Shown here: positions 3,225 through 55,636 of the stretch, piece by piece
Numbering within the stretch: position 1 is the stretch's first letter
Layout: each line of letters opens with the position of its first letter
NCBI RefSeq assembly: GCF_963853765.1
Contig: NC_088854.1
Coordinates: 13,330,001 to 13,394,000, forward strand
Origin: Magallana gigas
Taxonomy: Eukaryota
Length of the DNA stretch: 64,000 nucleotides
Direction: 5' to 3'
Position numbers and translations under genes: made by a program
Notes under the pieces: generated by a model
The model's database searches: none
The model's input: the letters and a program-made list of their open reading frames with translations, nothing else
Told to the model about the DNA's origin: nothing

Positions 3225-5045
3225 CTGAAAGATAAAGAATCTCCCGCATGTCATATTGCTAAATAATAGTAAAAAATAAACACTAAAAAAGTAAATGTAA
3301 ACAGCAAAAAAAAGATGATAGCCAATACAGAGAAATCAAAGCAAATAATTGATTTAGGAATGGAATTTTTTTAAAAAAGGTGCAGCCTGTTCATTCTCCT
3401 GGAAAATACAAGAGCATCTAAATGTCTGTTGCAATGCATTCTGAAACAAACGTGGAAATTGAAATCATTTATCTTTCTGTCAACTGGAGCTGAGTAATTA
3501 TATCTGCTTTCTTTCGATCCTCGTGGATCACATGGGGTGTAAGATTATATAAGCAGCAACAATGGAGGTTGATAGTCAGCTGCAGTTGAAGATTTTCACT
3601 TAATTCATATTAGGTGAGGACAAAACCTTGATAATAGGATATGTCTGTAGAAGGTTATCGAGACTTGATTTTAAAGTGTTTTAGCTAGTAATAGCTGTTA
3701 AGGTAAATAGGAAGCAAGTGCACTCCATGATATAGTAAATATTATTGATTGAAATAGTTCATTGAGAAAATTTATACTTGTAGTTAATTTATATACATGT
3801 ATCTCATAAATTGCTCAGGCAGAGCAGCTAAATATCAAAGCCCATAAATGTTACACAATGCATCTTAATGCATCAGTTTATCAATATTCATTTTAATTTC
3901 CATAGTTTCTGCAACTTAAAAAGTTGTAGATCTTAACTTATTTTTTTTCTCTGTAAGAAGGCATGTCACATACAGCAGGTGAGGTATGATTGATAACTTG
4001 GATTCCAAATTTTTTGTCCCTGCAAGTTTGGCTTGTCTGTTAAAGTCGTGGAACTGCCCCCCCCCCCCCCCCCCCCCCCACCACCAAAATTTTAAAAACT
4101 GATTATTTATCTGCAAAGCATATGCTAAATAACAATATCATGTATCCCCTGAAGCATCACCCCCTGCAAACTCATCTGTAAAGAAGTTTATGTACAGCAT
4201 CCAAGCAAAGGTGCATTAATGGGTAGATGGATTGGCATGAATTTGGGATTTATTTGGATGTTTGGGACCTGTATTGAATTGTTTAATCTGCTCCAAAGAC
4301 TCAAGGTAAGGCTAAAAATACATTATTCAGAGAGCCATAAGTATATGAGGGCAAAATAAAAGAGCTACTAATATTGAAAAAAGGAAGTGTTCCAAACATA
4401 CTCTACCATTCAAACTCCCATGACCAGTTCATTCATCCAGGAAATACAAAATCTAACACTGGTACATGTATTCTGTATCCATGGATGCTCCATCTTTGCA
4501 AGTTTAGTTCAGATAGGAAAAGCACATAGATACAGAACTTGTGAATGAGATCTGTCCTTAAAACTTCAACCTTTTCCAAAAAGAGGTACACCTAGTGATC
4601 CATGCTGAAAATTCAGTATTTGAAATCTGACTGGTATAATGTAACCCTTGTTGCAGCATTTGTGCAGCTCAGGTCTGTAATAGGCAATTCGGTGAATTGG
4701 GCATGGAACCTTCTTACTCTAAAAACTTGACCCTTGGCTGCTGACACCAACATAAATGCTGGTGGTATAAAGAAAACAAGACTCTTTGAATTACCTTTTC
4801 TGGGTTTGGTCACTTCCTTGTAATAATGGTTCACCCGGTACACCAGAGCACTACAACGTGAGGATTATATTTAAAAACCATCTGCTACAATTGTCCGATC
4901 TATACTTTTCAAATCTTTACATCTGATTGCAGGTAAAATGTAAAAACTGACGATAAACCAACAGCTTATTTTCATCCAGGTTTTTTTTATATCAATATTA
5001 ATCGTGTAGGTATACTAGTATATTGAATATGATATAATTTCATAC

Positions 5046-5540
5046 CTTGCATGAATCCAAAACATATTTAAGGTCTTCCTTTTTAAATTCACTAAGAAAT
5101 GTCCAATGCTTTCCATTGGCTAATCTTTCTAAAAAGTCAATAATGGGATCAGGACAATCTTTACAATTATCTTCAATAGTTTTCCATAGTTTTTCCTGCT
5201 TAGTAGCAGGTTTCTCGATGTCATTTACTATACCATCTACATCATCTGCTTTATTGTCTTGTTTTTTGTTTTTCTTCTTTTTCCCCTTTTTGGATTGTCC
5301 ATCTGTTTCATTGTCATTTGATTTCTCCCCACGCTGCGTCTCTCCCTTATCTACAACTTTGTCAGGTTCTGCTTCAACTTCTTTCTGCTGAGGTGAAAGC
5401 TTCGGTTCTTGGCTTTCATGTGATTCTTGAATTGGTTTTGAGTCTTCGTCTTTAACTACTGGGTTCTTTGAAGCTGTTGGTTCTGCTGAGTAATTCTTAG
5501 GTTTTTTACCTGCTGATTGTTGCCCTCTCTTTCGTCCCAT
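5046..5540 (-). CDS. First coding exon of an uncharacterised multi-exon gene: Lys/Glu-rich low-complexity N-terminus followed by a probable helical domain
   Basis: Part of the 200-aa ORF 5040-5642. Acceptor CTTATTTTTGAG| just upstream (exon start 5553), ATG at 5540 (MGRKRGQQSAGKKPK...), phase-0 donor AAG|GTATGA at 5046/5045. A candidate non-coding upstream exon ends at the AAG|GTACGA donor near 5992. No family recognised. Confidence 0.55.
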
Positions 5541-6795
5541 TTTGCTTTCCTTTCTCAAAAATAAGATACACATTGAAGAATTTGAAGTGGAATTTTTAAA
5601 AATTAAGTCATTATCATAAAAATATTTTCCTTTTGTATACAAATTTTAACACATTTAAATTTTATTTAATCATATAAATCAAATTATCTTAGATCTACAA
5701 TGTACATGTATATATACATCTGCTACTCCATAGACAAGTCTGTGTTGTAGCCAACTGATAGCTGATAATTAAGGAAAATGAAATGGATAAATTTTGCAAA
5801 AACGGATTGATGTGGTTTTAGTGTAACAAAAATGGAGGTCATATAATTACCGTATACGTTATTCATTCTACGATAAAAACTTAATGTTGTGTATGAACAT
5901 GTCTTAATTTCCGTCAGCTTACTATACATGTATACATCAACAATTTGATATTTTAAACATTTTCTTACTTTTATCAAAATAATTGTCGTACCTTAAAAAA
6001 ACGTGCAGAGATTTTTAACAAGATTCTTTTTCACGTTTCCTGTTTCACGAAGAATGTAGTATACCACCAAGAAATGTAACACACGAACGCTTGTCTGGCT
6101 AAGTCTACTTTCGTTTCGATTCTTCTTCCTGAATTGCGATTAGAGTTGTCTTTCTTTGAACATATATGTACAAGACTGAAAACTCATAGAGACTGGCAAT
6201 TCAAGTCTAACATCATATAAATAAGCCTTCTTATAATGATATTAATAGTAGAGAAATTGATATAGACATGGTAAGTATGACGTTCAGATTTAGAGGTATT
6301 AAACTATTTCTTAAAATCCAAAATGCTTTAAAATATTTAATGTGTGAATACGGATATATCAGTTATATTATATTATATGGTATATTTAAAAAGCAATACG
6401 AGCTGTAATTTTTAGAATTTAATTTTGCTGCAAAAACCTGCTAGTATGATAAGTCTGCATATAACTTAAACTTTTATAATGAATAAGATTTGAAAAAATC
6501 ATGAATTTTTGTCAAAGGACATATTTCTCTTCTAAGGAATACATATAGCAAATCAATTTTAAGGCTCCTTAACGGCATTTTCCACAAAAATATGGCTAAC
6601 AGAAATTTAAAAACCATGTTATTTTTGTTATTATAGTAGAAAAAATATTTTTCGATTTTGTAATGTTAGAGGCGTTTTATTTAATTATGTCTCTGGTAAT
6701 GTATAGTCCAATACAATGTACTGTTCATCATTGTGAATGATGATTTTAAAATCAAATCTTACATAACAATGACTAAAAATCATATAAATATAAGT

Positions 6796-6943
6796 AATAG
6801 GGAATCATTCCTTGAAAATTATGATGTGATCATATAGTGTCGGGGTCGGGCGTGATCAAATCTATCAGGGCTTTACTGCATGGATCTGATCACTTTCGAT
6901 CGTATTTGATCACCTCATTATACTCAAAGAATGATTCCTTATT
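6796..6943. mobile_element. ~150-bp palindromic miniature element (MITE-like)
   Basis: The left arm AATAGGGAATCATTCCTTGAAAATTATGATGTGATCA is an imperfect inverted repeat of the right arm (reverse complement AATAAGGAATCATTCTTTGAGTATAATGAGGTGATCA). Confidence 0.6.
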
Positions 6944-7534
6944 CCTTTAAATAAATTAATATACAGCAATTAAACAATCAATCAACTTTCAGGTAAGTAT
7001 CACATAAATTTTATACATTCATATCCCATATTGAGTATCGATTTTCCTTTTGTAGATCAGATAATATAATATTTTGTTTGTTTTACCTTAAACTTATTAT
7101 AATTATAAAAATATTATAAATAACATTTTTAAATTAAAAACACAAAACCAAATGAATCATACGGGGAAAAGGTCCAACGTACAGGCTTTATATATGATGT
7201 CCCCCGCCCCAAACGCGGGAAACGCATGCATGCATTTTATATGTAGACGGTGACGGGGTCTTATCTTCTGTTGTGCTCTGAGTAAATTCTTTAGAGTGGA
7301 CCCCGGACTGAATATAGTTAAGTCATATATCCATGTCTGTGCAAAACATATATCATAAGTACCCGTAATTAACTAAATAAAGACATCTGCCCATGTCTAG
7401 TATACTGAGATTTGCTACACATATAATTATATAGACTTTGAATTTCTCTGTATAGGATATCATTTCCCACAGTTGCCAACACCATTTCTCGTACGGGCAT
7501 CCCAGAGTAAGCACGAGCACTATCGAAAAATCAT

Positions 7535-7557
7535 ATGGACATTGGACGTTTCAGGTA

Positions 7558-7633
<76 letters not shown>

Positions 7634-7804
7634 GAAAACGAAAGTGATAGTAAAGTTTATGATTTCTGCGTATCCTGCTAAAAATAGATTCTTGATTTTT
7701 CCGAAACAATTCTAAAAATACATGATTACGTATGACTATATATAAAAATAAGACGGATTGAACAACTTCATTCCTCAAAAATGTGCACCTTAGCTCCACA
7801 AATG
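7535..7804 (+). CDS. Tentative 5' exons of the stand-alone RCR gene (7535-7554 and 7753-7804; alternative ATGs at 7781 or 7802)
   Basis: ATG GAC ATT GGA CGT TTC AG|GTAGGC, then AG|A CGG ATT ... CAA ATG|GTGAGT, gives an in-frame MDIGRFRRIEQLHSSKMCTLAPQM joining exon 8238 in phase 0. The donor at 7805 is strong, but the acceptor at 7752 lacks a pyrimidine tract. Confidence 0.35.
7562..7630. repeat. (TC)n microsatellite
   Basis: Perfect TC dinucleotide run of about 35 units directly after the GTAGGC donor. Confidence 0.95.
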
Positions 7805-8237
7805 GTGAGTAAAAATTTATAACAATTCCACATGGACTTAGTAAAAGAATCTCTCACTTTTCATGTTCACACTCTACCCTGTGCGATCTTCTTGTGCAGT
7901 TTTAGGTTATTTTTCATGTTTTAAATTGCATCCAATGTGGTACTATATAGCTGTTTATTTTCAATCCATGAGACTAATTATGTATTGCTAATAGAATGAT
8001 TACATTGTCAAATTTATTATACATGCCCCAGCACTCTTGAGCGGTAAATTATATTGAATTCTACTACGGATATTTACGGCGGAAACTTAAGTAATATCGT
8101 CATCTTTTCTGCAATTCTTCACCAATGAAATTGATATTATTTTTCTACACTGGCCTTTATTAAGGCCACCCGTATATTTTATATCTTTGATTATAAGTTA
8201 CATTTTTGTTGAGACTTTTGATTTATTTATTCAAAAG

Positions 8238-9981
8238 GAATTCTTCCAAACCTGCCGAAGACCTCTACCGTGCGGACACCCCTGCGGGGGGATCCCCAGC
8301 GAGAACTCCTGTGCCCCCTGTCTGGTGGAAGGGTGTCAGCCTCACTACGGGGACGGCTGTTGTCCTGTATGCGCCGATCCGTGGGCGTCAAACGCCGTCA
8401 TACAGGTAAATCTGAACCATTTTCTGAAAATGTACCAATAGATTACCTAACGTACTCCAGGTATGCTCAGGTATATTTATCTTAATTATCATCAAATCTA
8501 AACTTCCTTATACATGTAGTGAAATCCTTACAATTCAAATGAAAGTTGATTAAATACACTTGTTTTACAAAATTCAAAGTACATTTCATTTACTTTTTAG
8601 CTTGATTGTGGACACATATTTCATCACGCCTGCATCAAACAGATGCTACAAAATCGCTGGCACGGATCCAGAATTACGTTTGGGTTTATGACATGCCCAC
8701 TCTGTAAAGTAAGTTTTCTCGATTTCTCAAAAACGAAAGAAACTCTTTCCCACTGAAGGAAATATAAATAAAGGAGCTTCATTTGTATTACAGAGTTCCA
8801 TCAGCCACCCTGACTTGTATGAAATCATGAGTCAGCTGATTCACTTGTACGATCAAATAAAGTCAAAGGCTCTGACACGACTTCAGCACGACGGGTTGTT
8901 CAATTCAAGTGACGTCACAGACCCGTCAGGGAAATATTTCCAGGACCCCACTGGATTTGCTATGGACAGATACGCTTACTACATGTGTTCAAAATGTCAG
9001 CAGGTAGATAAAAATATAGTTATACTATATTTATTGTTTTCCTTTGATATTGTAATATACAATATTTTTTGTTTTGCCCATTGGGGTTTAACGTCAAAAT
9101 ATTACTAATATAATGTTTTGTATTAATCTTTTTTTTTTAAATAAATAACCCATTGAAGTTTTGACATGCAAATAGATCTATGCAATACTTTGTAGCCTTA
9201 CTTTGGAGGAGAAGGGCGTTGTCAAGAATCCGTGGTGGAAGTGGATCCGTCAGATTTGGTTTGCCCTCAATGTTCTGACACCACCAAAAACAAGGTCAGA
9301 AAATCAACCTTCACTTATAGACACAGTGGTGCTAATAATATCCTCCTAACTTCCCATGTTTTGAATTAATGAAAAATCTTGGCGCATAAGATATAATTTC
9401 TCGACTTCAGTGCACTCCTTTCTCTCTCTGTAGATCTGCTCCATTCACGGTGCCGAGTATGTGCTATACAAATGCCGATACTGTTGCTCGCCGGCTCTTT
9501 TTCACTGTTTCGGTACCACTCATTTCTGTGACCCCTGTCACAGCAACTACACAACAGTCCATAACAAACCAGCATCCAGCTTACCCAAATGTCCTGCAGG
9601 TAACGTGAGAAATATACCTGGGCCCTTTATCTGTTTGTGACAACTAACTACCCTTTCTTATCTTACTTTTTGTCTTTCTGTTTAATAAACTATTTGCTTT
9701 CTTGTCATTTAATTAACTATTGGTTAATTTTAATATGATAATTTATTTGTATTTATAAAAATATACGAGTAGAATCAAGATATGATGCAGACTAGAGGTG
9801 ATCCAAAATGGTTACCCCAAAACAGGGAAACGAACCTCTTTCACTACATATGTATTTATTTTTAGGACCTTGCGGGAAGCAACTCCCTGGCTCTGTTTGT
9901 CCGCTGGGGATGGACCACCCTCCCACGGGGGAAGAATTCGTCATCGGCTGTGCCATGTGTATCAACACTCACTCATTTTGA
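8238..9981 (+). CDS. Stand-alone MYCBP2-like RING-Cys-Relay (RING-H2 + tandem-cysteine) E3 ligase module, about 290-310 aa
   Basis: Six GT-AG exons: 8238-8405, 8601-8708, 8794-9003, 9196-9294, 9434-9599, 9866-9981 (TGA 9979-9981); 867 nt, open throughout. Translation includes CRRPLPCGHPCGG, CPVC...LDCGHIFHHAC...[61 protein letters not shown] and [21 protein letters not shown], colinear with the MYCBP2 C-terminus at 54044-55636. AATAAA at 10006-10011. Confidence 0.88.
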
Positions 9982-11433
9982 AATCATTGTACAAAGTTTG
10001 TTTTCAATAAAATGTTTTTGTTATACATTTTCGTTGTTGTTCTTTTTTTAATATCCACAATACATTGTCATCGTATAAAAATTTGTTTTCAAACCATGTT
10101 TGTTATATTTCTGATATATTCCCAGTAAAGCAATGATTATATTGGCAACATTATTCTATTTTGATTATTAAATGCAATACTGAATGTTACATTTCTGATG
10201 CGATATTCTATTATAATGCATTAATATGTGTAGGGGCGGCACATTTTAATCCGCTCCTCAACCTCAACCGCTGTCAAAAATTAAATTGATATTTGGATGA
10301 ATACAAAACAGACAGCGAGATATATATTGATTTTCTAAATATAAAAAAAATAGAGATACTAGTACTCAGAAAACGATTTGTTCAGAGCTCTGTAATAATT
10401 ATTGCAGACAATAAATTACTTGTACATAACCAGATAAAAGTGTCTGTGGGGAATAATGTAGATCAGTGTTTTCAATTTTAAAAAATGAAAAAAATTAAAG
10501 CGAAAAGAGAACACAAACTGTACATTGTATATACCGGTATATGTTTTTTTTTCACACAATTCATAATCATAAAAATAGTTTGCCTCTTCTTTCAAGACTA
10601 TCTTATTTCTAAACGATTTTTCTTGCTGTTGTTTGGTAGGTGAACATCGTCATTGTGCAATCATGACATTATGATACTAGTAACTTTGTAAGGGTGGATC
10701 AGTCAAATAAAAGTTGCTCGTCGTAGGGAAATTATTATTTCGGAAAATACCGGTATGCTGCCCTTAGAGTTTATTTATTTTTCCTCTTTTATTTTCAAAT
10801 GATTTTTTCCTACCAACATACCTTTTGGTGCTCCGCAAAATTAGGAAAGTTGGGAACTATTTATATTTCGAGATGACCCCTTTCAAAAACCAAGCGGTAG
10901 AATTCAACGTTTCTTGAAAGGTAACTGTGCTAGGATAAATCGATATCAGGTTAAAAGAAAATACATGTAATCAGATTTGGAATTGATACTTCACCAGTTT
11001 AACATTATATTTAAAACATATTAATGTGTCTAAGCCTATCCGGAAAAAAATGTCGTTTATTTCAGTGTGAGATATGCAAATATGAAAAGAGACACTATGA
11101 TACATGAATGTATATGTTTAAAGGTGGGAAATAGAGCAATTTCCGAGATTTGAGTTGAATTTTCGAAAACTTAGATTGTTTAAAACTGTTAAGGACACAC
11201 GAGACGTTCCTCAATTTTATATAATTTTCCTTGATATTTTATTCTTTATTTATTAACATTTAAACCTGTTGCTACCCCAAATATTAGGGAACATTACCAG
11301 GCTCTTTTCCGAGCTAGAATATTTCGAATTTTCCTTAAAATAGCATGCAAAATGCATTTGAATGCTTATAAATAAATCCATACTATACATTCCTTTATAC
11401 GGTATCTAAATAAAGAAAGAATCATATAACATA

Positions 11434-12460: not shown

Positions 12461-15400
12461 ATGGCGACTTTGCAGATTTCTCCGGCATCGAGGAGCGAAC
12501 TGGCCAAGTTCCTGGCTGGGGATATTCTGAGGGACAAATTCCACAACCTATTTCAGTGGTGTGACGAAGAGAGCATCAAGAACAAGTAAGTATGGGGAAT
12601 TTGTGAGCAAGGATAAGTCTGGAAGTGAACCGATCTTTCAATTTTTATTTCTAAAATTGGAATTGTCTTTTTCATACATGCATAATATTTATTAAAATTT
12701 TCTGGTTTTGCCACACTCAGCCTCATTGATATTGTGCTAAGGATGTTTGATAATATCTGAATGATTTTAAAAAAGAGATGACCACAAAAATAAAAATAAT
12801 TATAGGACTCGAGCAAAATTGATGTTAGATAAGATGTCTGGGAAATGACTAATCCCCTATAAATAATGCTAATGAATTGTATCAAATTTCTACCATCTTT
12901 ACATGGTATGTTAATTTGCAAAGTATAAAAGAGTTTAGAGATAATTAAAGTTGCATGTTCCACTATGATGTCTTTGCCCAATTGTATCATAATATTTTAT
13001 CTCTTACATATCTTTGTTGAAACTGTCTCGAAATGCAGATTTGATTCTTATTGTATTAATTTTTACTTTATTTTTTATATTTCATTTTTGTTGTTCATTA
13101 CTATTTTTCTACAAGACTGTTTTGACTTCAAGCTTAATTTTAGAATGCGGATCCATCTATTTTTTTCACCTTTATTTTGATCATCAAAATTATACAAATG
13201 AATTAAGCCAGGTGATGATTAAATACTAAGAACCCAATGTTTTGGGATTATGAGATGACAATATCATTCGAAACTATTTACAATGCATTAACTTCAAAGG
13301 AAAGAATTATTGACAATAACTTTCTAACATATCCATGATGAATCGTCCTTTATTATTTAATGTGTCGTTTTGTGTAAGTTTGAGTTTACACTGCTCTGCC
13401 CTGATAATTATAGATTTATTAATGGTATTACATGTACTAGATAAGAATAGTTTAAAGAGCATTTGTATATTTTGTAAATAGATTTATGGAGGTAACAATT
13501 CTTAGAAATTAAGGCAGAGAAGTAGAATATGATATGAAAAATTCATATCAATAAGATCTCTGTGTCAGTATAAGAACTTCAAGGCAGTTTAAAAAGGAAT
13601 GCAAATATTCAAATGTAGACAAATTGAACAAAACTGGTTGGAATGTGAAGTGGTTTTGTCGTAAATCTGTTTGAACAAAACTGGTTGGAAGAAATATTCA
13701 GTAGATGTAAATATTCTAGTTTGACTTTGTTACATTCCTCTCTTTTCTGTTTTGTGAAAGCAACATTAGATAGTACTCAGGATAACTTTACAAAGACATT
13801 CAATTTCTGCATGTTGATTTTACTCGTTTCACTAACCAATTTCATGTACACGTACATTTACATATCAAAACCATTTATGATATTTCAGCGCTCGAAGTTG
13901 CGAAGAATAAGGTCGCATATGCGACTTAAATTCAGGATCTGCGACTTAAATGAAAAGCCAGTCGCCATTTTGCGACCAAAAATATCTGCCCGGTTTATTT
14001 TCAAAAATTTTACACCGGGTTCAAATCTTTCAAAAATTAAAAATGGTGGACTATTTAAACAATATGGCATGTTTCAGTCCTATATTAATCTATACAAAGA
14101 CAAGACTTCATCCGATGGAAGTTTTATATGCAAAACCGCTTGAGACAAATATGTTTAGTAATGTTTATGAGACTTTAACATATCGAGAAGGTAATGTAGC
14201 GCGACCGAGCATGCGGTCTTATTTCTCCACTATTCTCTATAAATTAATCCATTTTAATTCACCTCTAATTTCCTTCTTTGGTAGTGTAAATAAAAGTCCA
14301 ATTATCTATTAACAAATTTATTCCGTTTTTACATATTAACAATTTACACAAACATAGGTCACTTTCTAAATCTGCCTCTCGAACTACTCTACCTACTCTC
14401 ACGCTTTCACCCATATATATACATAACGGGGGCAGCTCCGCCGGAGCTGCTAGTACCCGGCAGCTCCTCGGTAGCTGCCGATCACTGATTACGTAATACA
14501 CATACACACGCTGTTGTTGACAAACAAATCACTCTCTACAGTAAGCTTATTTTGTTACGCCTATGTGAAAGAATTCCATACGATATATTCTTTTTACGTT
14601 TCAATCAAAACAAAGTACAATTTTGAAGATTTTGTAGACTTGTCTCCCAAGAATCAATGTGAAGAAAACTTCTAGTGCCAAAAAATATTATTATACATGT
14701 AATGAGTATGATGTGTCATTTTTGATTGGATATTAATTTTTGCCAGACGTGAAACAATAAATAAAAACCTTTTTAACAAATTGAACACACTTCTTTTATT
14801 ATTTTTTACAGTACATTTAATGAGAGAAAATATGCAGATATCTTAATGCTACATAAAGTTTCACTACTTGCGACCTGAATTTGAAAATGGTGACTAAAAT
14901 TCATAGCAGGTTGCCATTTGGCGACTTTGTCTAAAAGTCTACTTTGAGTCCTGTATTTTATGTAGAAAAGTGGTGTATGAAGTAATTAAAGATGTACAAT
15001 TTCAGAATTTATGTGACAAAGTATTTTATTTTTAAGGAAACTGAAAAATGATAAGAGGAAAGGGAAAAAGAAAAGCAAACTCAAATCAAAAGAAAAGAAA
15101 AACAAGGTACGTTCATTTAATAAGATTACTGTTATATAACTTTTTAGGATTATTTATTTATATCCTACATTTTACTATTCAATATTTCAGAAATTTTGCC
15201 CAATTTTCCATATTTAAATTTTTTTTATATGCTATGAAAAGGATGCCATATTTGTAAATTTTTAATGCAAGTGTTCAAATGAACTTTGAGAGATATTATA
15301 CTCTTTTCACTCAGCAAAGAGACAAGAGTCCCGAGTCGACAGAGATCAGGCGGATTAGTGTTGACCTCTATGCCAACCCGTCCCTGTTCACTGTGTACGC

Positions 15401-21400: not shown

Positions 21401-24400
21401 TTGTTAGATTCTTAAGTTTAAAGCTTTTTGAAAAAGTGTTTGTGTCATGAACAGATTTAACAGACCAAGAGACAGATTACACCAAGACCAGCAGCCTCCC
21501 TCCCACAGAGCTGGATGTGGGCGGGGCTGACAACCCAGCCATCCAGATAGCTTGTGGACAACACCATACCGGTAAGTTGACAACTTAGATCTATATCAAG
21601 TATCACTAAATCATGCACATTATTATCAGTAGACTTCTGATATATAATTGATAAAATAATATCATGTCTAAAACAAGAGGAGTAATTGTACATATACCTG
21701 GGTGTTTGTGTGTTTCAGTGGTGCTGCTACAGAGTGGGGAGGTGTATACATTCGGCAGTAATCAGTACGGGCAGCTGGGTCAGGGAGATACCGCCGTCAA
21801 GTAAGTTCATCAAGTGGAATCTTTCTTAAGATTTCAATAAGTAATGTAATTGAGTGACTTTGTGAATACCACTTACCCATTAAGTTATTCTCTCCAAAAT
21901 GTACTATTATATGTGAATATTAATTTACGGAATTCAAAAAATTGTTTGAATACAAATGTTTATGCATGTTCATTAATTGTAATGTGAAAAATGAACCCTC
22001 GATTGTAAATGATTGCACAGTAATGAGTTAACAGACAGAAGCAAAACTGATAATAAGATGTAACATACATTGGTTCAAACTAAGAAAGGCATTTTCAGAG
22101 GTTGTGTTGGTAAAGTGTATTTGACTTTGTCATCTAACGGAATGTGTTGTTTCAGGGGTTGCCCTGTGTTGGTGCCGCTTCCACACCCAGCTGTTCAGGT
22201 AGCTGCTGGTAGCCACCATACTGTGGTGCTTCTGAACAATGGACAGGTGTATACATTTGGAAACCACCAGGTAATCTAAACACCAGAATTGAAAGCCCAA
22301 AAATCAATGAATAACTTGTATCGGATTTATCATTGCTTTGTGTAGAGAATAACAAGGTTGTATTCATAATTTACAGAAACATGCATTAGGCAGAGCAGGA
22401 CCAGATGAAGCCGGAGCGATGTCAAAGAAAGCTTTGTGGTATGCTGTACCAGGCCCTGTGCCAAGCATAGGTATGTTATCAAAAGAGAGTGATATAGGGT
22501 TTACAGCTATATTTTGATTCAGATCTTTTTACTCCATCTAAAGATTCCTTATTTTGGTGATTACAAAAACATGTACATGTTTATATGATTGGTTTTCAGC
22601 TGGTCAGGTATATGTGTACATGTATTTCAGCATTTATATCTGAATTTTTCAGGAGGGAAAGAAAAATATTTATCTGGAGTTCTGTTTGGTTAAATTGTTT
22701 TAACCCCCTCTCCCCCCCCCCCCCCCCCACAAAAAAAAACAAAACATAAAATGTTCTAGTTTCAGTAAATGAATGAAAATTTACATGCTCTAGTAATTAT
22801 ATGTATTATATGATGTGTAGGGGCCCGGTATGGAAGAAGAGCCACCTGGATTGGAGCAAATGGGGACCAGACATTCCTGAGAATTGATGAGTCCCTCATC
22901 AATGCCCACATCTTGGCAGCCTCCAAAGTGTTTGCCAACCAGAAAAGCATAGGTAATGCAGTTTTTAAATGTTTTAAATTGTAACAAGAATATCAGAACT
23001 GTCATTAAGTAATGGTGGAAAGGTTTGACTTCTTTTATTTGGTGCTCTACCTCTTGTTTCCTGTGTGTTTTGCTGAGACTGCGTGATTTTACAGGTCTGA
23101 TTCCTATTGGAGAGGAGAACACTGCTCTGATGAAATGTCTGATGATCAGCAAGGTGGACGGGAGTTGTCGCAGGTACTGGAGATAATCAGTCTGTAACGA
23201 ACCTCGATATCAAAGTAAAATTGTAGAAATTAAATTGTAAAAACTGTCAATGGGGAAATATTTATGCTGTTTATTATTCAATATGTGTACCATCTAAATT
23301 GATATGATTTAACTGTATTTTCCACACCACTGTGAATGTAACTCCATATACCTCAAGAAACCATGTTATCCATCTTGAATTCTTGATTATGAGAAGAAAA
23401 AAAATTATTACCCTATTATGTAACTAATCAGGCATTATCTGTGCATGTTTCAGTCTGGGGGGAGCGGAGCAGGAGGATCTCTCTAAGCATGCTGTTTGTC
23501 TGGATCCAGTCTACGATGTGTTATGGAGGTCAGCAATGCTCATTACATGTACTTCTGTACTGTTTAGAAGTTAATTGCCTGCTGGTATACCATATGTATT
23601 TGATTGAAGAAGTAAGAAAAACTGAACAAAATTTCAACATGAAAACATTTTCATTCAGTACATAATCTATTTTTAGCTACTTGCCCAGTAACCATGAGGT
23701 GTCCTGCTACAACTGCTTGGCCTCAGAGTCTCGGGCTTTGACCTGTGACCTATTTGAACCAGAGTTAGCAGTTCCAGTCAGAACTGGGTGCAGTACAACT
23801 AGATCTCACTGTGCCCTTCATATGTTAGGTCAGTCAGAACTATATGTACATGTAAATCTTTTGTTCATTCTAATTTACATCAATCATGATCAGTGTGATA
23901 AGAAATGATAGGTGTTCCAAATTTGTCCTTATATTTGGTTTGGTTTGTAGGGTGTTTGGATGTCCTAACCATGGCCCAACAGGCCAACTTGACAGTTGTG
24001 GAGGAAACCAAGGAGAAACAGGCCACCTCTAAAGTTTACACCAAAGATGACTTCACCATGGTCAACCGCTTCGAGAGTGAGTACATTTCAGATTGTTGGA
24101 AGTCTTGGTAGTGTTGTACATTAAATCAGAACCATTCATGTAAAAAAAAAAGAACAGATTACATAATATAAGTGCAAATGGGAGTGAAGTAGGTCAATTA
24201 AGTTTTTTTTAAAAATATGAACACTCTGTCTGACAATTTCTAACTAAATGTGGCTGTTGACAGGTCATGGAGGTGGATGGGGTTACTCAGGACATTCCAT
24301 AGAAGCCGTTCGCTTCATGTCAGACACCGATATCCTTCTGGGAGGATTTGGGCTTTTCGGTGGAAGGGGAGAATACTATGGCAGGATAAAGGTTTGTAAA

Positions 24401-51400: not shown

Positions 51401-54400
51401 CCCCCTTCCATTTCATTAAAATCTAGATGGATTTCTCAATGTCAAAAATCTGTCTGATATTTTGGTTACAGTGACCTTCAATATCCTTATTTTTGTCAAA
51501 AAAATAAATTTTGTTAGTGTTGTTTGATCATGTTGAAATTTCGTTTACAAGGTAATTTCGGTTCTACGGCGAGTTCTCCAAGACGTGAAACCCCAGACCC
51601 TCTCTAACATCCTGTCCGTGCCTGCTCTGCCTCCTGTTGAGTACAGCATTGTGAGTCTGGCCAGTCGGGACGAGACTGCCTCCTTTGATCCTGAACAGCC
51701 TGGTCTTCTGGACGTTTTGCTATCATGCATCAGCAAGGCCCTCACAGTACAGACCAAGATTAAGATCAGCGGACCACAGAAAGCAATGACTGCTGTCAAA
51801 CTAGAGGACTTCCTTGGATCTACGTAAGTCTTCAGGAATTTAATTTAACATATTTATTCAAATTTGTTTTTTTAATAGAAAAATTTAGCACTTCATTAAT
51901 ATTCTTTTGTTATTTTAGAGCTTCAAAATCTCGCTGGTGGCTGAGAGGAAAAATTAATGAAAGTTTAGCAAACAATGTCATCACACTTATACAAGACATG
52001 GCCTCGGTAAGATAAATCATGATCTGTTGGTAATATTATTTCCCATGTGATTATCAAAGTACCAGGTATGTGATATAACTCTCACTCTATTGTACCCCAG
52101 GGTCAGTTGTCGGAGACATGGGCACCTGTCACCAAGGCAGCCATTGCTGAAGCTATTCTGAATCTCACCAAGTTGGGGGAGAAATACAGAGATCCTCAAG
52201 TTTGCCTCAAGACCCCAACTGTAAGTCTTATCCAAAGGGAGTACATCTAAAAATTTCTAAGGTTAAATGTCTCTCAGTTCAACTTTGAATTACATGTATT
52301 AGTACTCTCTGATGTTATCTTACTTAAAATTTGTGAAAAATAAGTTTCTGAATGTTGTGTAAGTATATATACCTGTAATTTTTCATCTCTTGGAGTGCTG
52401 TTTAGCTGTTGAAGGACTTTAAAGCAAATGCATGTACCTTTATGTTACAGCTGTGGTTGTGTCTGGCCTCCCTCTGTGTTCTGGACAAGGATCATGTGGA
52501 AAGACTGACGTCTGGTCAGTGGGTCAGCGGTCCAAACGGTCAGCACGGACAGCCAAGGGTAAGTAACTCAAACCTCCCAGGATAGTTACATCAATTCATT
52601 CTCTGCAGTGCATGTGCATGGTGGAACGGGTTCTGTAAACAGAACTGTTATTGGTGATCTTATTTTTACATTTGATTCATGGACCAATTGATTTTTGTGT
52701 AACAGCACAACAAAGTTTTGTTTTGTTTACAGCCGACCTGTGATAACCATGACGACGGGGAGACCCAGGCCATCATTCTGTGCAGTGACTGCGGGAACCT
52801 GTGTGCCGACTGTGACCGATTTCTCCACTTGCCCAGGAACAAACGCTCCCACCAGAGACAGGTACACACCTTATGTATAGTGACATCATGGACAAATTCT
52901 TAAGATCAATTCTATGTAAGAATCAAAATTTGGTGGCCACTCATAGTCACTGATTTTCTTCATACTTAATAATTTGATAGACTTTGGTGAGTAAAAAAGC
53001 CTAACAAGTTAAATAACAGTCAGTTTATGTTTGACAGTGTTTATGTCTGACAGTTTTCATTTCTGTGTATATCTGACAGTGTCTATGTCAGTGTATATGC
53101 CTGACAGTGTTAATGATTAACAGTGTTTATTAAATCAAAATATGATCACATTGCAAGTGTAACTTCAAGTTAGAATAGTAGATTTTTACTGTTTGCTTAA
53201 AATGTCTTTATTTTGTCTTATGTCTTGATTTTCCCTAAAAAAGGTAATGAATATATAGCATATAAAAGTCTGCCTTATTTTGATGAAATTTAAGAACTGT
53301 GAAGTAGACCTTTGTTTTGTGTCTGTCACCGATTGTTACATTTGCTGGCTGTAGGTGTTTAAGGAGGAGGAAGAGGCCATCAAGGTGGACCTACATGAGG
53401 GCTGTGGCCGGACCAAGCTCTTCTGGGTGATGGCTCTGGCCGACTCCAAGGCTCTCAAAGCCATGGTTGAGTTCAGAGAAGGTACTGTCTGATTTGGTTA
53501 AGTATTGTCAGAATACAACAATGGGATTGAAAAGATAGATATATTTGCAAAAACATTTGTTCATTTGAAATGTTAAACAATTCTTCTTGATTCTTCCATT
53601 GCAAACATATAACGGTACATTTGAACACGCCTCTTGTTTGTATTATTAAATGGTTTAGCTATGCGTTTATGTTTCAATTCTGTCTGATCTCTGAGATTCG
53701 GTCTCCCTTACAGGGAAATCTACAGCCGCTACCTCAGGCCCTGGCAGGTGTCGCTTCTGTGGAACCACAGGAAAGACTGGCGTGCTAGCCATCGGCAATG
53801 TTTGCTCGGACCCAGATTGTCAGGTAAAAGGGGACTCATGTTGAAAGAGGCTTTACTGTTTTGTTACGTAGGCACAGAGTTGAGTTATTCCCCTTTGCAA
53901 ATTTTGAAATGAAAATATCTGCCTGAGGCATTATGATTGGAAATTTTTGGCTCTAGTACCAATACATTTATAATTTTGGGCCTTAACACAATCACCAGGT
54001 ACTAAGTGCAACAATTCTTATTCACTGGTTCATCTTTTTTTAGGAGCATGCCCAGAATGCCTGTCAGAAAGTCCTTGCTTGTGGACACCAGTGTGGGGGG
54101 ATTGTTAATGAAGAGGAGTGTCTGCCCTGTCTCCACAACTGCCCGCCGTACCAGGGCAAACTAAAACAGGACGCCGATGACATGTGTATGATCTGCTTCA
54201 CCGAGGCTCTCTCTGCAGCCCCTGCTATCCAGGTTTGTGTCTAACATTAAATTTTATGAATCTTAAACATTTGCATACCAGATTTATTTTGTTTTAATTC
54301 AATCGATTAAAACTAATTCTTTTATCTTTCCAGCTACATTGTAAGCATGTTTTCCACCTTCACTGCTCCAGAAATATATTGGAGAAAGGATGGGTGGGTC

Positions 54401-55636
54401 CAAGAATTACATTTGGATTTTCACTTTGTCCAATATGCAAGGTACAACATTATGTTACATTAAGTTGGTCTTTTTTACTTTATTCCTATGTTGTTTGATT
54501 TTGATAATGATAAATGGTCCAAAAATTAAATTAAACATATATTTTATTTTCATATCAGAACCCAATAGACCACTCTGTGCTGAAGGAACTGCTGAAGCCG
54601 ATCCGTGACCTGTTCAGTGATGTGAAGCGGAAGGCTCTGATGAGACTGGAGTACGAGGGACTACACAAGGCCGAGGCCATCACCACCCCCGGGGCTCGCT
54701 TCTACAAGGACCCTGCTGGGTTTGCCATGGACAGATATGCCTACTATGTCTGCTACAAATGCAAAAAGGTATTTCAACAGTATATGTTTATATACACGTG
54801 TACAGGTAAATTATTAGTTTATATTTTGTGTAGAATATTTTCATTTCTACAGTAATTTGTTATGCTTGATTTTAAGGCTTATAATGGAGGTGAGGCCCGC
54901 TGTGATGACCAGATAGGGGTGGCTGAGGACTATGACCCCCGGGAGCTGGTGTGTGGGGGGTGCTCTGACGTCTCTAGGGCCCAGGTAACTTCAACCTTCA
55001 TCTCCATCTTACAATGTATCATAAGAGATGATTCAAACCACTCAAATTAATGTTATGAAAATGATGTTCAAATGAAAGTATCAATGTTAACAATCCTACA
55101 TTCCATTTACATTATCAATGTTGTAGATGTGTCCAAAGCATGGGACGGATTTCCTGGAATACAAGTGTCGCTACTGTTGCTCTGTCGCTGTCTTTTTCTG
55201 CTTCGGTACCACCCACTTCTGTAACGCCTGCCATGATGACTTCCAGAGAGTCACATCTATAGCCAAGACTGAGCTGCCCCACTGTCCGGCCGGTAAGAGA
55301 TAAAAAATGACTGTAGAATACAGGTAAAGAACTTAGGTAGTTTAAGGCCACACCAGGATGGCTGTACAATTAAATAATAACATGAGGTTGTTAGTGCATG
55401 GTTTGAGATAGTGTTGGGTTATAATTTAGATGAATTTCCTTCTCTATGTATTAACATACACATGTAGAGAGAAAACTGGCTCACTATTATTAGTAACAAA
55501 TGTGACTAAATCTTTCACAGGACCTAGGGGGAAACAGCTTGAGGGTGAGGAGTGTCCACTTCATGTCCAGCACCCACCCACAGGGGAGGAGTTTGCTTTG
55601 GGGTGTGGAGTCTGCAGAAACGCCCACACCTTCTGA
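12461..55636 (+). CDS. MYCBP2: E3 ubiquitin-protein ligase MYCBP2 (PAM/highwire/RPM-1, PHR family), complete, 84 coding exons, ~4667 aa
   Basis: Hand-traced exons, all GT-AG and phase-consistent: 12461-12585, 15037-15106, 15315-15542, 15802-15955, 16183-16364, 16547-16694, 17290-17402, 17527-17592, 17804-17900, 18013-18083, 18227-18368, 18618-18694, 18797-19007, 19344-19511, 19634-19789, 19940-20008, 20199-20462, 20745-20846, 21455-21571, 21719-21800, 22156-22270, 22377-22470, 22821-22952, 23095-23173, 23454-23528, 23677-23828, 23951-24076, 24264-24391, 24531-24622, 24836-24970, 25210-25293, 25466-25562, 25753-25945, 26176-26453, 26756-26986, 29770-29961, 31760-31963, 32217-32351, 32526-32707, 32948-33090, 33355-33452, 33767-33949, 34172-34519, 34656-34743, 34980-35035, 35206-35378, 35583-35727, 35905-36090, 36469-36640, 36871-36959, 37047-37163, 37570-37795, 37898-38022, 38156-38414, 41009-41314, 42408-42521, 42909-43236, 43327-43527, 43658-44367, 46194-47101, 47243-47450, 47661-47866, 48151-48324, 48546-48686, 48818-48961, 49240-49464, 49669-49734, 49940-50179, 50439-50594, 50906-51006, 51106-51256, 51552-51823, 51919-52006, 52101-52220, 52451-52558, 52733-52861, 53355-53481, 53714-53823, 54044-54232, 54334-54441, 54559-54768, 54877-54984, 55127-55292, 55521-55636. 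Total 14004 nt. Recognisable motifs: [66 protein letters not shown] and the C-terminus [21 protein letters not shown]. Confidence 0.96.
13886..14953. mobile_element. ~1.07-kb non-autonomous DNA transposon in MYCBP2 intron 1 (CAG termini, possibly hAT-like)
   Basis: Imperfect TIRs CAGCGCTCGAAGTTG and (reverse complement) CAGGACTCAAAGTAG; GCGAC/GTCGC motifs repeated near both ends; TATTT on both flanks (possible 5-bp TSD). No transposase ORF. Confidence 0.5.
20560..20669. mobile_element. ~110-bp Tc1/mariner-type MITE (TA-flanked)
   Basis: TA-CAGTAATTTGCCGA ... TCGGCAAATTACGG-TA; 14-bp TIR with one mismatch. Confidence 0.65.
20941..21281. mobile_element. TTAA-flanked non-autonomous DNA transposon (Kolobok-like), 341 bp
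   Basis: TTAA at 20937-20940 and 21282-21285; TIRs GGTACCTCACTACACC and GGTGTAGTGAGCCACC (14/16 match). GG...CC termini fit Kolobok rather than piggyBac. Confidence 0.75.
21044..21118 (+). pseudogene. tRNA-like (Arg-TCT-like) Pol III cassette inside the Kolobok-like element
   Basis: A-box TAGCTCAGTGG (21051-21061), loop CTTCTGA (TCT at 21077-21079), B-box GAGTTCGAATCC (21094-21105), TTTT at 21115-21118. The acceptor and anticodon stems do not pair. Confidence 0.55.
24264..25293 (+). other. MYCBP2: MYCBP2 PHR domain 1 exons
   Basis: [37 protein letters not shown]...[25 protein letters not shown]. Confidence 0.9.
27678..28786. mobile_element. ~1.1-kb non-autonomous Tc1/mariner-superfamily (pogo/Tc2-like) element
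   Basis: Perfect 26-bp TIR CCGTAATCCGGTGAATATAATACGCA at both ends, TA on both flanks, subterminal GGGGTGCGTATT repeats; no transposase ORF. Confidence 0.85.
29962..31450 (+). repeat. 40-bp minisatellite (consensus TGTAAGTCTGACTTGTCAAAGTCTCAGTTAAAGGTCTGGA), ~36 units with variant units
   Basis: Exact 40-bp period visible from 30001. Later units include GTTAGT and shorter CACAGC..CTGGTCTGTTT variants. The array begins at the donor of exon 29770-29961. Confidence 0.95.
31760..32707 (+). other. MYCBP2: MYCBP2 PHR domain 2 exons
   Basis: [30 protein letters not shown]...[26 protein letters not shown]. Confidence 0.88.
35206..36640 (+). other. MYCBP2: MYCBP2 FBXO45-binding region, filamin-type repeat and RAE1-binding motif exons
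   Basis: [63 protein letters not shown] (EELR motif). Domain assignment is from recalled PHR-family literature. Confidence 0.7.
38494..40778 (-). mobile_element. HINE-like element (reverse orientation) with ~160-240-bp tandem repeats and an inserted AT-rich satellite
   Basis: Left end TTTTAGCTCACCGAGACG...GGGAGCT hairpin, then a GGCGTC microsatellite remnant. CTTCACCA(A/G)ACTT units at 38611, 38788, 38969, 39205 and 39362. The right end carries the inverted subterminal repeat CGTCTCGGTGAGCT and the small palindrome GTAATC..GATTAC, ending in TT. Confidence 0.75.
39640..40630. repeat. ~1-kb degenerate AT-rich pentamer satellite (ATATG/ATATT/ATACA/GTATT-type)
   Basis: Continuous low-complexity TGATAT/ATTGTAT/ATACAAT runs, almost free of G+C. 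Confidence 0.85.
44396..46083 (-). mobile_element. HINE-like element (reverse orientation) with a ~440-bp higher-order repeat
   Basis: Terminal hairpin GTCTCCCCTTT-C-AAAGGGGAGAC (44403-44425), (CTT/CTTATT)n microsatellite, CACCTCCTAA anchors at 44791, 45231 and 45669. The subterminal GGGGAGAC recurs at 46038-46045, followed by a TGTTTTTTT..AAAAAAACA palindrome ending CTAGTT. Confidence 0.78.
49240..50179 (+). other. MYCBP2: MYCBP2 DOC/APC10-like domain exons
   Basis: [26 protein letters not shown]...[12 protein letters not shown]...[21 protein letters not shown]. Confidence 0.85.
52733..52861 (+). other. MYCBP2: MYCBP2 B-box-type zinc finger exon
   Basis: [30 protein letters not shown]...H. 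Confidence 0.85.
53020..53130. repeat. Short degenerate ~15-bp minisatellite (GTTTATGTCTGACAGT-like)
   Basis: The TGACAGT/TAACAGT motif recurs several times at roughly 15-nt multiples. Confidence 0.6.
54044..55636 (+). other. MYCBP2: MYCBP2 RING-H2 plus tandem-cysteine (RCR) catalytic module exons
   Basis: CMICFTEAL...[10 protein letters not shown]...CPICK; GGEARC (upstream relay Cys); [18 protein letters not shown] (downstream Cys). Confidence 0.93.

Follow-up and report, generated by a model that had tools for sequence, protein, structure and literature searches.

The RING-Cys-Relay (RCR) module is known from MYCBP2, in which the ubiquitin-conjugating enzyme (E2) sits on the RING domain and ubiquitin is transthiolated to a first cysteine and then relayed about 24 Å to a second one, where a Cys-His-Glu triad esterifies threonine or serine, with no lysine activity (PMC9527308, PMC9120709). 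Reviews (including PMC9527308) and a 2026 E3-ome compendium give MYCBP2 as the example of an RCR E3 ubiquitin ligase; in the literature consulted it is treated as the sole example of the class, and the module as the engine that drives a very large multi-subunit assembly. Here, we describe a short gene, hereafter the mini gene, located in a 64,000-nt stretch of Magallana gigas contig NC_088854.1 (the window, to whose positions all coordinates refer), next to the full-length MYCBP2 gene. We consider it probable, with a good measure of confidence, that the mini gene is a duplicate of the terminal exons of MYCBP2 which encodes a bare RCR module, presumably a compact transthiolating E3. The gene thus encodes the engine alone and is kept across oyster genera, which shows that selection can preserve the module by itself.

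The mini gene consists of seven exons (Table 1). Exons 1 to 6 all show AG and GT borders and, once spliced, form a single open frame of 288 codons, which runs without stops or frameshifts to a stop codon of its own and is followed by an AATAAA signal. Their lengths (168/108/210/99/166/116 nt) parallel those of the last six MYCBP2 exons (189/108/210/108/166/116 nt), with identical intron positions and phases. All this had been read from the sequence in a first-pass annotation, and it was borne out by the splicing data and by the exon comparison. The exon-pair identities given there were also recovered: 19/36 for the 108-nt pair (counted by eye from the translations) and about 30/56 for the 166-nt pair, where 29/55 had been claimed. 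Overall, the mini product and the canonical oyster RCR share 140 of 288 residues (48.6%). A tblastn search of the window with the mini product found one other copy (54059-55633), and a six-frame search of the 564-Mb genome recovered two RCR copies only, the mini gene and the end of MYCBP2. In one respect the first-pass annotation fell short: it started the gene at 8238 and missed a seventh, 5' exon (exon 0), which is present in a public transcript contig (L011) and in the RefSeq model. Such an upstream start exon is required, because exon 1 begins at a splice acceptor and offers no ATG in frame until halfway through the RING. With the eight residues of exon 0 (MCTLAPQM) the product reaches 296 amino acids, in line with the roughly 300 expected, and it is this form on which Cys179, Asp190, Cys228 and His239 are numbered. 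It is identical letter for letter to RefSeq XP_065931178.1 from M. gigas, and the N-terminus of the RefSeq model (P0121), MCTLAPQM followed by EFFQTC, agrees with the joint between exon 0 and exon 1. Upstream of exon 0, the frame contains a stop codon and no further ATG. Among the peptide stretches unique to the mini product is the GGEGRCQESVVEVDPSDLVCPQCSDTTK region.

Pfam analysis of the 296-aa product returned RING families only, with zf-RING_2 and zf-RING_UBOX above the cut-offs. In a phmmer search against the chains of the PDB, the human MYCBP2 RCR constructs 5O6C and 6T7F were matched with E=7e-90 from residue 38 to the end of the 288-codon frame, and the next matches were bare RING domains (E>1e-6). 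In an alignment of 62 RCR sequences, the eight RING-H2 ligands (C50, C53, C67, H69, H72, C75, C96 and C99), the ligands of the tandem-cysteine domain (CSKC, CPQC, CSIH, CRYCC, CDPCH, KCP, VCP, HPP and CAMC) and both relay cysteines all fall on invariant columns, which corroborated their retention as noted from the letters alone. The motif YFGGEGRC of the mini product aligns with YFGGEARC of 5O6C, in which chain residue 143 counts to C4520, the equivalent of Cys179; HCFGTTHF aligns with human FCFGTTHF (C4572), the equivalent of Cys228, and the CH that follows lies on the catalytic histidine. Cys179 is retained in all oyster, Mytilus and unionid copies, and Cys228 and His239 are invariant. An AlphaFold2 model of the mini protein (mean predicted local distance difference test score, pLDDT, 82.6) was compared with known structures, a check that the first-pass annotation had proposed. 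Full-length matches were obtained to 6T7F_A and 5O6C only (template modelling score 0.70-0.73, 246-250 columns, E 1e-31 to 1e-28), and the remaining ones covered just the RING portion. Judged by its sequence and predicted fold, the mini protein has every structural and catalytic residue class of an RCR module. It shares with the human MYCBP2/PAM RCR (residues about 4378-4640) the layout of RING-H2, helical linker and tandem-cysteine domain, is 48-49% identical to it across the whole crystal construct, and agrees with it in all zinc ligands, both relay cysteines, the catalytic histidine and the predicted fold. However, the module makes up the whole of the oyster protein, whereas in human MYCBP2 it is the last 6% of a scaffold of ~4,700 amino acids.

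Transcription of the mini gene was analyzed using RNA contigs from four runs (X1, X3, X5 and X7) of four studies, mapped on positions 4200-10150. The five introns between exons 1 and 6 were all found spliced, with GT..AG borders, and each was supported by at least three of the four runs: the joint between exons 1 and 2 in X1, X3 and X7, that at 8708>8794 in all four, those of exon 4 in three to four, and that at 9599>9866 in X1, X5 and X7. One contig of run X1 terminates at 10027, 16 nt past the AATAAA, and continues into 23 A residues; since the genome reads TTTTCG at this place, the A run is non-templated and the poly(A) tail genuine. With regard to the 5' end, L011 matches 7775-7805 exactly and then passes directly to exon 1. 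Contig depth is 0 across 7583-7781 and starts at 7782, and in run X3 a short loose end before 8232 is consistent with splicing from a sequence ending in AGCTCCACAAATG. The true 5' end may lie slightly upstream of 7775. A longer N-terminus beginning with MISK (database protein P0006, from contig L011) was rejected, because the first 588 nt of L011 match another chromosome (C5) at 100%, which identifies the contig as an assembly chimera. These results showed that the mini gene is an independent gene which is transcribed, spliced and polyadenylated and has its own start exon and stop.

The gene downstream of the mini gene is full-length MYCBP2. Its start was located by comparison with the Crassostrea virginica and Saccostrea echinata loci; its ATG lies at 12461 on the same strand, 2.4 kb past the poly(A) site of the mini gene, so that the earlier description of a separate gene beside MYCBP2 held. 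Two PHR domains and a filamin repeat were found in the window, all of them within the downstream gene (Table 1), and Pfam scans of ten long plus-strand open reading frames between 13 and 36 kb gave a single weak filamin match only. Compared with the PHR proteins (MYCBP2, Highwire and RPM-1), the mini protein corresponds, as a paralogue, to their six C-terminal exons and lacks the RCC1-like, PHR, filamin, FBXO45/SKP1-binding, Myc-binding and DOC regions. The absence of RCC1, PHR and DOC, already stated in the first-pass annotation, agreed with the Pfam analysis. It also diverges much faster: it is 48.6% identical to the canonical oyster RCR, which in turn is 83% identical to the spider RCR. A PHR protein is a giant scaffold with RCC1-like, two PHR, filamin, FBD1 and DOC regions. 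The mini protein does not have this architecture and is therefore to be classed as a paralogue of the module, outside the PHR family, although RefSeq calls it "E3 ubiquitin-protein ligase MYCBP2". That name is misleading for a 296-aa protein and represents an annotation problem. As to the origin of the gene, the six 3'-terminal exons of MYCBP2 would have been duplicated and a tiny new 5' exon would then have been gained, supplying the start codon.

Orthologues of the mini gene were searched for among proteins of 158-504 aa. Complete short ones were found in C. angulata (298 aa, 98% identity to the mini protein), in a transcript of a sister Crassostrea species (297 aa, 93%), in C. virginica (291 aa, 78%), in Saccostrea cucullata (300 aa, 74%) and in S. 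echinata (298 aa, 73%). When the exons were mapped exactly, C. virginica, S. echinata and S. cucullata each showed a start exon of 15-30 nt and then exons of 162-174/108/210/99/166/116 nt. The order MIEAP gene, mini gene and MYCBP2 is common to M. gigas, C. virginica and the two Saccostrea species. In C. virginica the MIEAP gene (minus strand) is followed by the mini gene (plus) and, 3.2 kb downstream, by a 4712-aa gene (plus); in S. echinata a 4689-aa gene with RCC1, PHR and DOC domains is preceded by a partial mini gene and a full one; and in S. cucullata at least three mini genes in tandem come after MIEAP. Pairwise ratios of non-synonymous to synonymous substitution rates (dN/dS) among the oyster copies were 0.05-0.22. 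The closest pair had dN 0.048 and dS 0.219, and since dS was at least 1 in the other pairs, their ratios are rough. In a careful tree the oyster copies formed a clade with 99/99 support. On these sequence comparisons, the mini gene is conserved across oysters under purifying selection, in position as well as in sequence. Independent transcription, low dN/dS and conserved synteny had all been named beforehand as checks on the gene, and each gave a positive result. Tandem amplification was observed in Saccostrea: the S. cucullata copies (L020:10001-24256) encode 300, 298 and 304+ aa, and the S. echinata locus (L015:6396-14464) contains, besides the full copy, a partial copy of 185 aa with a dN/dS of about 0.1.

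Based on the homology to human MYCBP2, a working mechanism can be proposed for the mini protein. Its RING would bind a ubiquitin-charged E2 of the UBE2D type, ubiquitin would move to Cys179 in the mobile loop and from there be relayed to Cys228, and a triad of Cys228, His239 and Asp190 would discharge it onto a hydroxyl group (of threonine, serine or another acceptor) and not onto lysine. By analogy with the human module, the mini protein is likely to be an active relay E3; that it esterifies hydroxyls seems only a little more probable than the opposite. Because the RCC1, PHR, FBXO45/SKP1-binding and DOC regions are lacking, its substrates must be found by a route other than the MYCBP2 scaffold, and the question arises how such an enzyme is guided to its targets.

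Several observations count against so direct a transfer of function from MYCBP2. The catalytic triad of the human protein, which we take to be C4572, H4583 and E4534, and the pocket for the threonine methyl group, presumably formed by F4573, F4578 and F4586, were positioned with the 5O6C alignment. The acidic position of the triad is Asp190 in the mini protein and Asp also in Crassostrea and Mytilus, and Glu in Saccostrea; Asp for Glu is a conservative change. Of the presumed pocket positions, F229 and F234 are kept, whereas the third is occupied by Tyr242 in M. gigas, by Tyr in C. virginica, by His in C. angulata, Saccostrea and Mytilus, and by Asn in Sinanodonta. In addition, the mediator loop is three residues shorter than in the human protein. 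Because a pocket residue is changed and the loop is shortened, chemoselectivity could differ from that of MYCBP2. The clade of oyster copies stands on a long stem (0.96-1.46 changes per site), which shows a burst of change after the duplication. At the transcript level, some contigs retain intron 0 (contiguous over 7895-8403), a form that would give at best a 218-aa product (P0122) without half of the RING, and an antisense transcript overlaps exon 1; the RNA contigs themselves reveal neither expression level nor tissue.

Three other explanations of the locus were considered. According to the main rival, the mini protein would be chiefly a regulator that sequesters charged E2, or that acts on or competes with the neighbouring MYCBP2. 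Its intact RING, the lack of a recognisable substrate-binding region and the location beside MYCBP2, in the same orientation, in every oyster examined would suit such a role. However, the relay cysteines, the histidine, the acidic residue and all zinc ligands of the tandem-cysteine domain are conserved under purifying selection, and a pure E2 decoy is disfavoured because it would not need the relay and tandem-cysteine residues; moreover, the short gene of Mytilus is not beside MYCBP2. We regard a mainly regulatory role as unlikely. The mini gene could also be a functionless transcribed duplicate, processed or decaying, whose frame is intact by chance. The fast divergence from the parent (the identity and the long stem given above), the intron-retaining transcripts, a polymorphic alternative start exon and the turnover of the start exon between close species are what a decaying copy might show, but an open frame is found in six oyster species or copies, dN/dS stays within the range given above while dS reaches at least 1, all 30-odd Cys/His ligands are retained and synteny is conserved, all of which makes this explanation very improbable.

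That the six exons form part of a larger unit, as alternative 5' exons of MYCBP2 or as 3' exons of an upstream gene, would account for exon 1 beginning with an acceptor instead of an ATG, for one X7 contig that extends to 10058, 31 nt beyond the poly(A) site, and for the 588 nt of foreign sequence at the upstream end of L011. That foreign sequence, though, belongs to a chimera, exon 0 has an ATG with in-frame stops upstream, and the frame ends at the stop at 9979, followed by the non-templated poly(A) tail. The upstream neighbour lies on the opposite strand, and independent RefSeq models of 291-300 aa exist in five species. We consider a larger unit the least probable of the alternatives, with hardly any weight, and a free-standing gene for a putative RCR ligase remains the preferred explanation.

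Table 1. Position of the mini gene, of MYCBP2 and of neighbouring features in the window.
Feature	Position	Strand	Description
Mini gene (whole)	7775-10027	+	Seven exons; product of 296 aa
Exon 0	7775-7804	+	Short 5' untranslated region; ATG 7781-7783 and ATG 7802-7804; donor GTGAGT at 7805; encodes MCTLAPQM
Exon 1 (168 nt)	8238-8405	+	Conserved Cys/His motif preceding the RING, and first half of RING-H2
Exon 2 (108 nt)	8601-8708	+	Second half of RING-H2 (CGHIFHHAC ... CPLC)
Exon 3 (210 nt)	8794-9003	+	Helical linker; start of tandem-cysteine domain (CSKC)
Exon 4 (99 nt)	9196-9294	+	Mediator loop: GGEGRC with upstream relay Cys179, acidic Asp190, CPQC
Exon 5 (166 nt)	9434-9599	+	CSIH, CRYCC, HCFGTTHF with downstream relay Cys228, His239 (DPCH), KCP
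Exon 6, coding part (116 nt)	9866-9981	+	VCP, HPP, CAMC; includes stop TGA 9979-9981
3' untranslated region	9982-10027	+	AATAAA 10006-10011; poly(A) addition site ~10027
Alternative first exon	7453-7554	+	MDIISQ...WTFQ; older 321/322-aa models (P0125, P0124); start codon is TAG in this haplotype
MYCBP2 first coding exon	12461-12585	+	By homology to first exon of the 4712-aa C. virginica and 4689-aa S. echinata genes
MYCBP2 PHR domains	24266-25294; 31802-32705		In the downstream gene
MYCBP2 filamin repeat	36334-36666		In the downstream gene
MYCBP2 last six exons	54044-55636 (54044-54232, 54334-54441, 54559-54768, 54877-54984, 55127-55292, 55521-55636)	+	Own intact RCR module; parental copy
MIEAP-like gene, exon of the 5' untranslated region	8252-8423	-	Near mirror of mini exon 1
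MIEAP-like gene, further exons	from 8594 upward; 5992-6128; 5046-5549; up to 4850	-	5046-5549 holds the ATG

The start exon itself is variable. Besides exon 0, an alternative first exon underlies older gene models (Table 1), and a sequence at 7948-8043 is the homologue of the start exon used by the sister Crassostrea species (L012:1-82) and contains an in-frame TGA in M. gigas. The start exon has therefore been replaced among species, the resulting N-terminal peptides being unrelated, with the RCR body retained. At 7552-7639, a long (CT)n microsatellite separates exon 0 from the alternative first exon.

Free-standing RCR-only genes, predicted as "E3 ubiquitin-protein ligase MYCBP2-like", are also found in other bivalves; those of oysters are clear orthologues of the mini gene by synteny and exon pattern. 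Mytilus species have a 290-aa RCR-only gene whose first coding exon consists of the ATG alone and is followed by exons of 168/108/210/102/166/116 nt; it differs from the oyster gene in this exon and in being away from MYCBP2, with SDA1 as its neighbour and no MYCBP2 exons within 10 kb. In the unionids Sinanodonta and Potamilus the version is 320-321 aa long and, in contrast to that of oysters, retains one further exon of the parental gene, and its last intron has been lost. In Sinanodonta woodiana (L017) the first coding exon occurs three times within 7 kb (3846-3917, 6684-6755 and 10001-10072), and the last two exons are fused. On sequence grounds, the short RCR genes of oysters, Mytilus and unionids may go back to a single origin or to several, since the careful tree gives a polytomy. 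The sister relationship of Mytilus and the oyster copies in a quick tree (93 in the Shimodaira-Hasegawa-like approximate likelihood ratio test, SH-aLRT) was dissolved into that polytomy. In the approximately unbiased (AU) test, a clade of oyster copies and Mytilus was not rejected (p=0.45), and a grouping of oyster copies with the canonical oyster RCR was rejected (p=0.006, with a long-branch caveat), a rejection that may reflect an old duplication or long-branch effects. Shared motifs (LTRL..GL and CH.N.T) were tried as proof of a common origin of the oyster, Mytilus and unionid genes, and failed their control: Mytilus shares 7/41 of the states specific to the mini protein, unrelated divergent RCRs share 5-6, and a sponge shares 12. 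Short "MYCBP2-like" models of a spider (288 aa) and a sponge (297 aa) were discarded as stand-alone genes. They appear to be annotation splits, because each lies directly behind a model of 4,418 or 4,614 aa and, in the spider, the listed Pfam families do not include a RING.

A wider survey suggests undescribed RCR architectures beyond the PHR giants. An exhaustive profile-free database search for RCR modules gave 431 clusters at E≤1e-30. Among the best 150 of the 431, most proteins are 480-1000 aa long with the RCR at the C-terminus, and both relay-cysteine motifs are present in 112 of the 148 top representatives. The architectures include Macro+RCR (database proteins P0038 and P0314), RING-IBR+RCR (P0179, P0191 and P0207, whose closest Atlas clusters are of ciliates) and an "RCR-type E3" of Dictyostelium purpureum (P0331); two mollusc-rich Atlas clusters contain short MYCBP2-like proteins. 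The non-PHR proteins carry the same RCR module with other N-terminal domains, come mostly from non-animal or unknown sources and are not close kin of the oyster clade. The fusion of a Macro domain to an ester-forming E3 is reminiscent of DELTEX and ADP-ribose chemistry. A bolder proposal, which we put forward as tentative and would not favour at present, is that the mini protein might be a self-sufficient ester-forming ligase, to which the altered pocket (Phe to Tyr/His) and the absence of the scaffold would give a substrate range unlike that of MYCBP2 (for example serine or non-protein hydroxyls), and the tip of a large unrecognised RCR radiation that would comprise the bivalve RCR-only, Macro+RCR and ciliate RING-IBR+RCR proteins. 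In that case, RING-Cys-Relay enzymes would form a widely distributed class of E3 instead of being a peculiarity of one giant neuronal protein.

Full-text literature searches turned up no account of this gene or of any other free-standing RCR, in agreement with the first-pass annotation, which had been aware of none, and "MYCBP2-like" occurred in two unrelated gene lists only. The gene model as such is already known from RefSeq and UniProt; the advance lies in recognising, on evidence of expression, synteny and selection, that oysters keep an RCR-only protein, a putative enzyme. This novelty is tempered by the many short or differently fused RCR proteins held in databases, and the enzyme class is a known one, with the mini protein as an as yet uncharacterised variant of its architecture. 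Being small and naturally occurring, the protein lends itself to studies of the relay mechanism and of hydroxyl selectivity, with natural variants at the acidic and pocket residues.

The upstream neighbour of the mini gene is a MIEAP-like gene on the minus strand (Table 1), assigned by homology to the C. virginica MIEAP gene and by a MIEAP Pfam match on the minus strand just before the window. Its RNA contigs showed CT..AC joints at 8423>8594, 6127>8251, 5548>5991 and 4850>5046. The exons of its 5' untranslated region run antisense through exon 1 and into exon 2 of the mini gene. The head-to-head overlap of the two genes amounts to at least 0.8 kb, and in run X5 the antisense contig was deeper than the contigs of the mini gene. 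The MIEAP family (PF16026) is greatly expanded in the genome, with 68 exon-level matches, nearly all of them on the chromosome of the window (contig C2). Very high RNA contig depth (1,400-2,600 in three runs) was recorded at 6389-6985, where loose ends are numerous and unusual short joints occur; this segment looks like an expressed dispersed repeat within an intron of the antisense gene. Finally, positions 1-1350 of the window contain a tandem repeat with a unit of ~165 nt, which shares about 76-80% identity with repeats found, on both strands, at the flanks of the Saccostrea locus (L015:1-1116 and L015:22354-23226), and the array is likely a conserved satellite or a mobile-element array.

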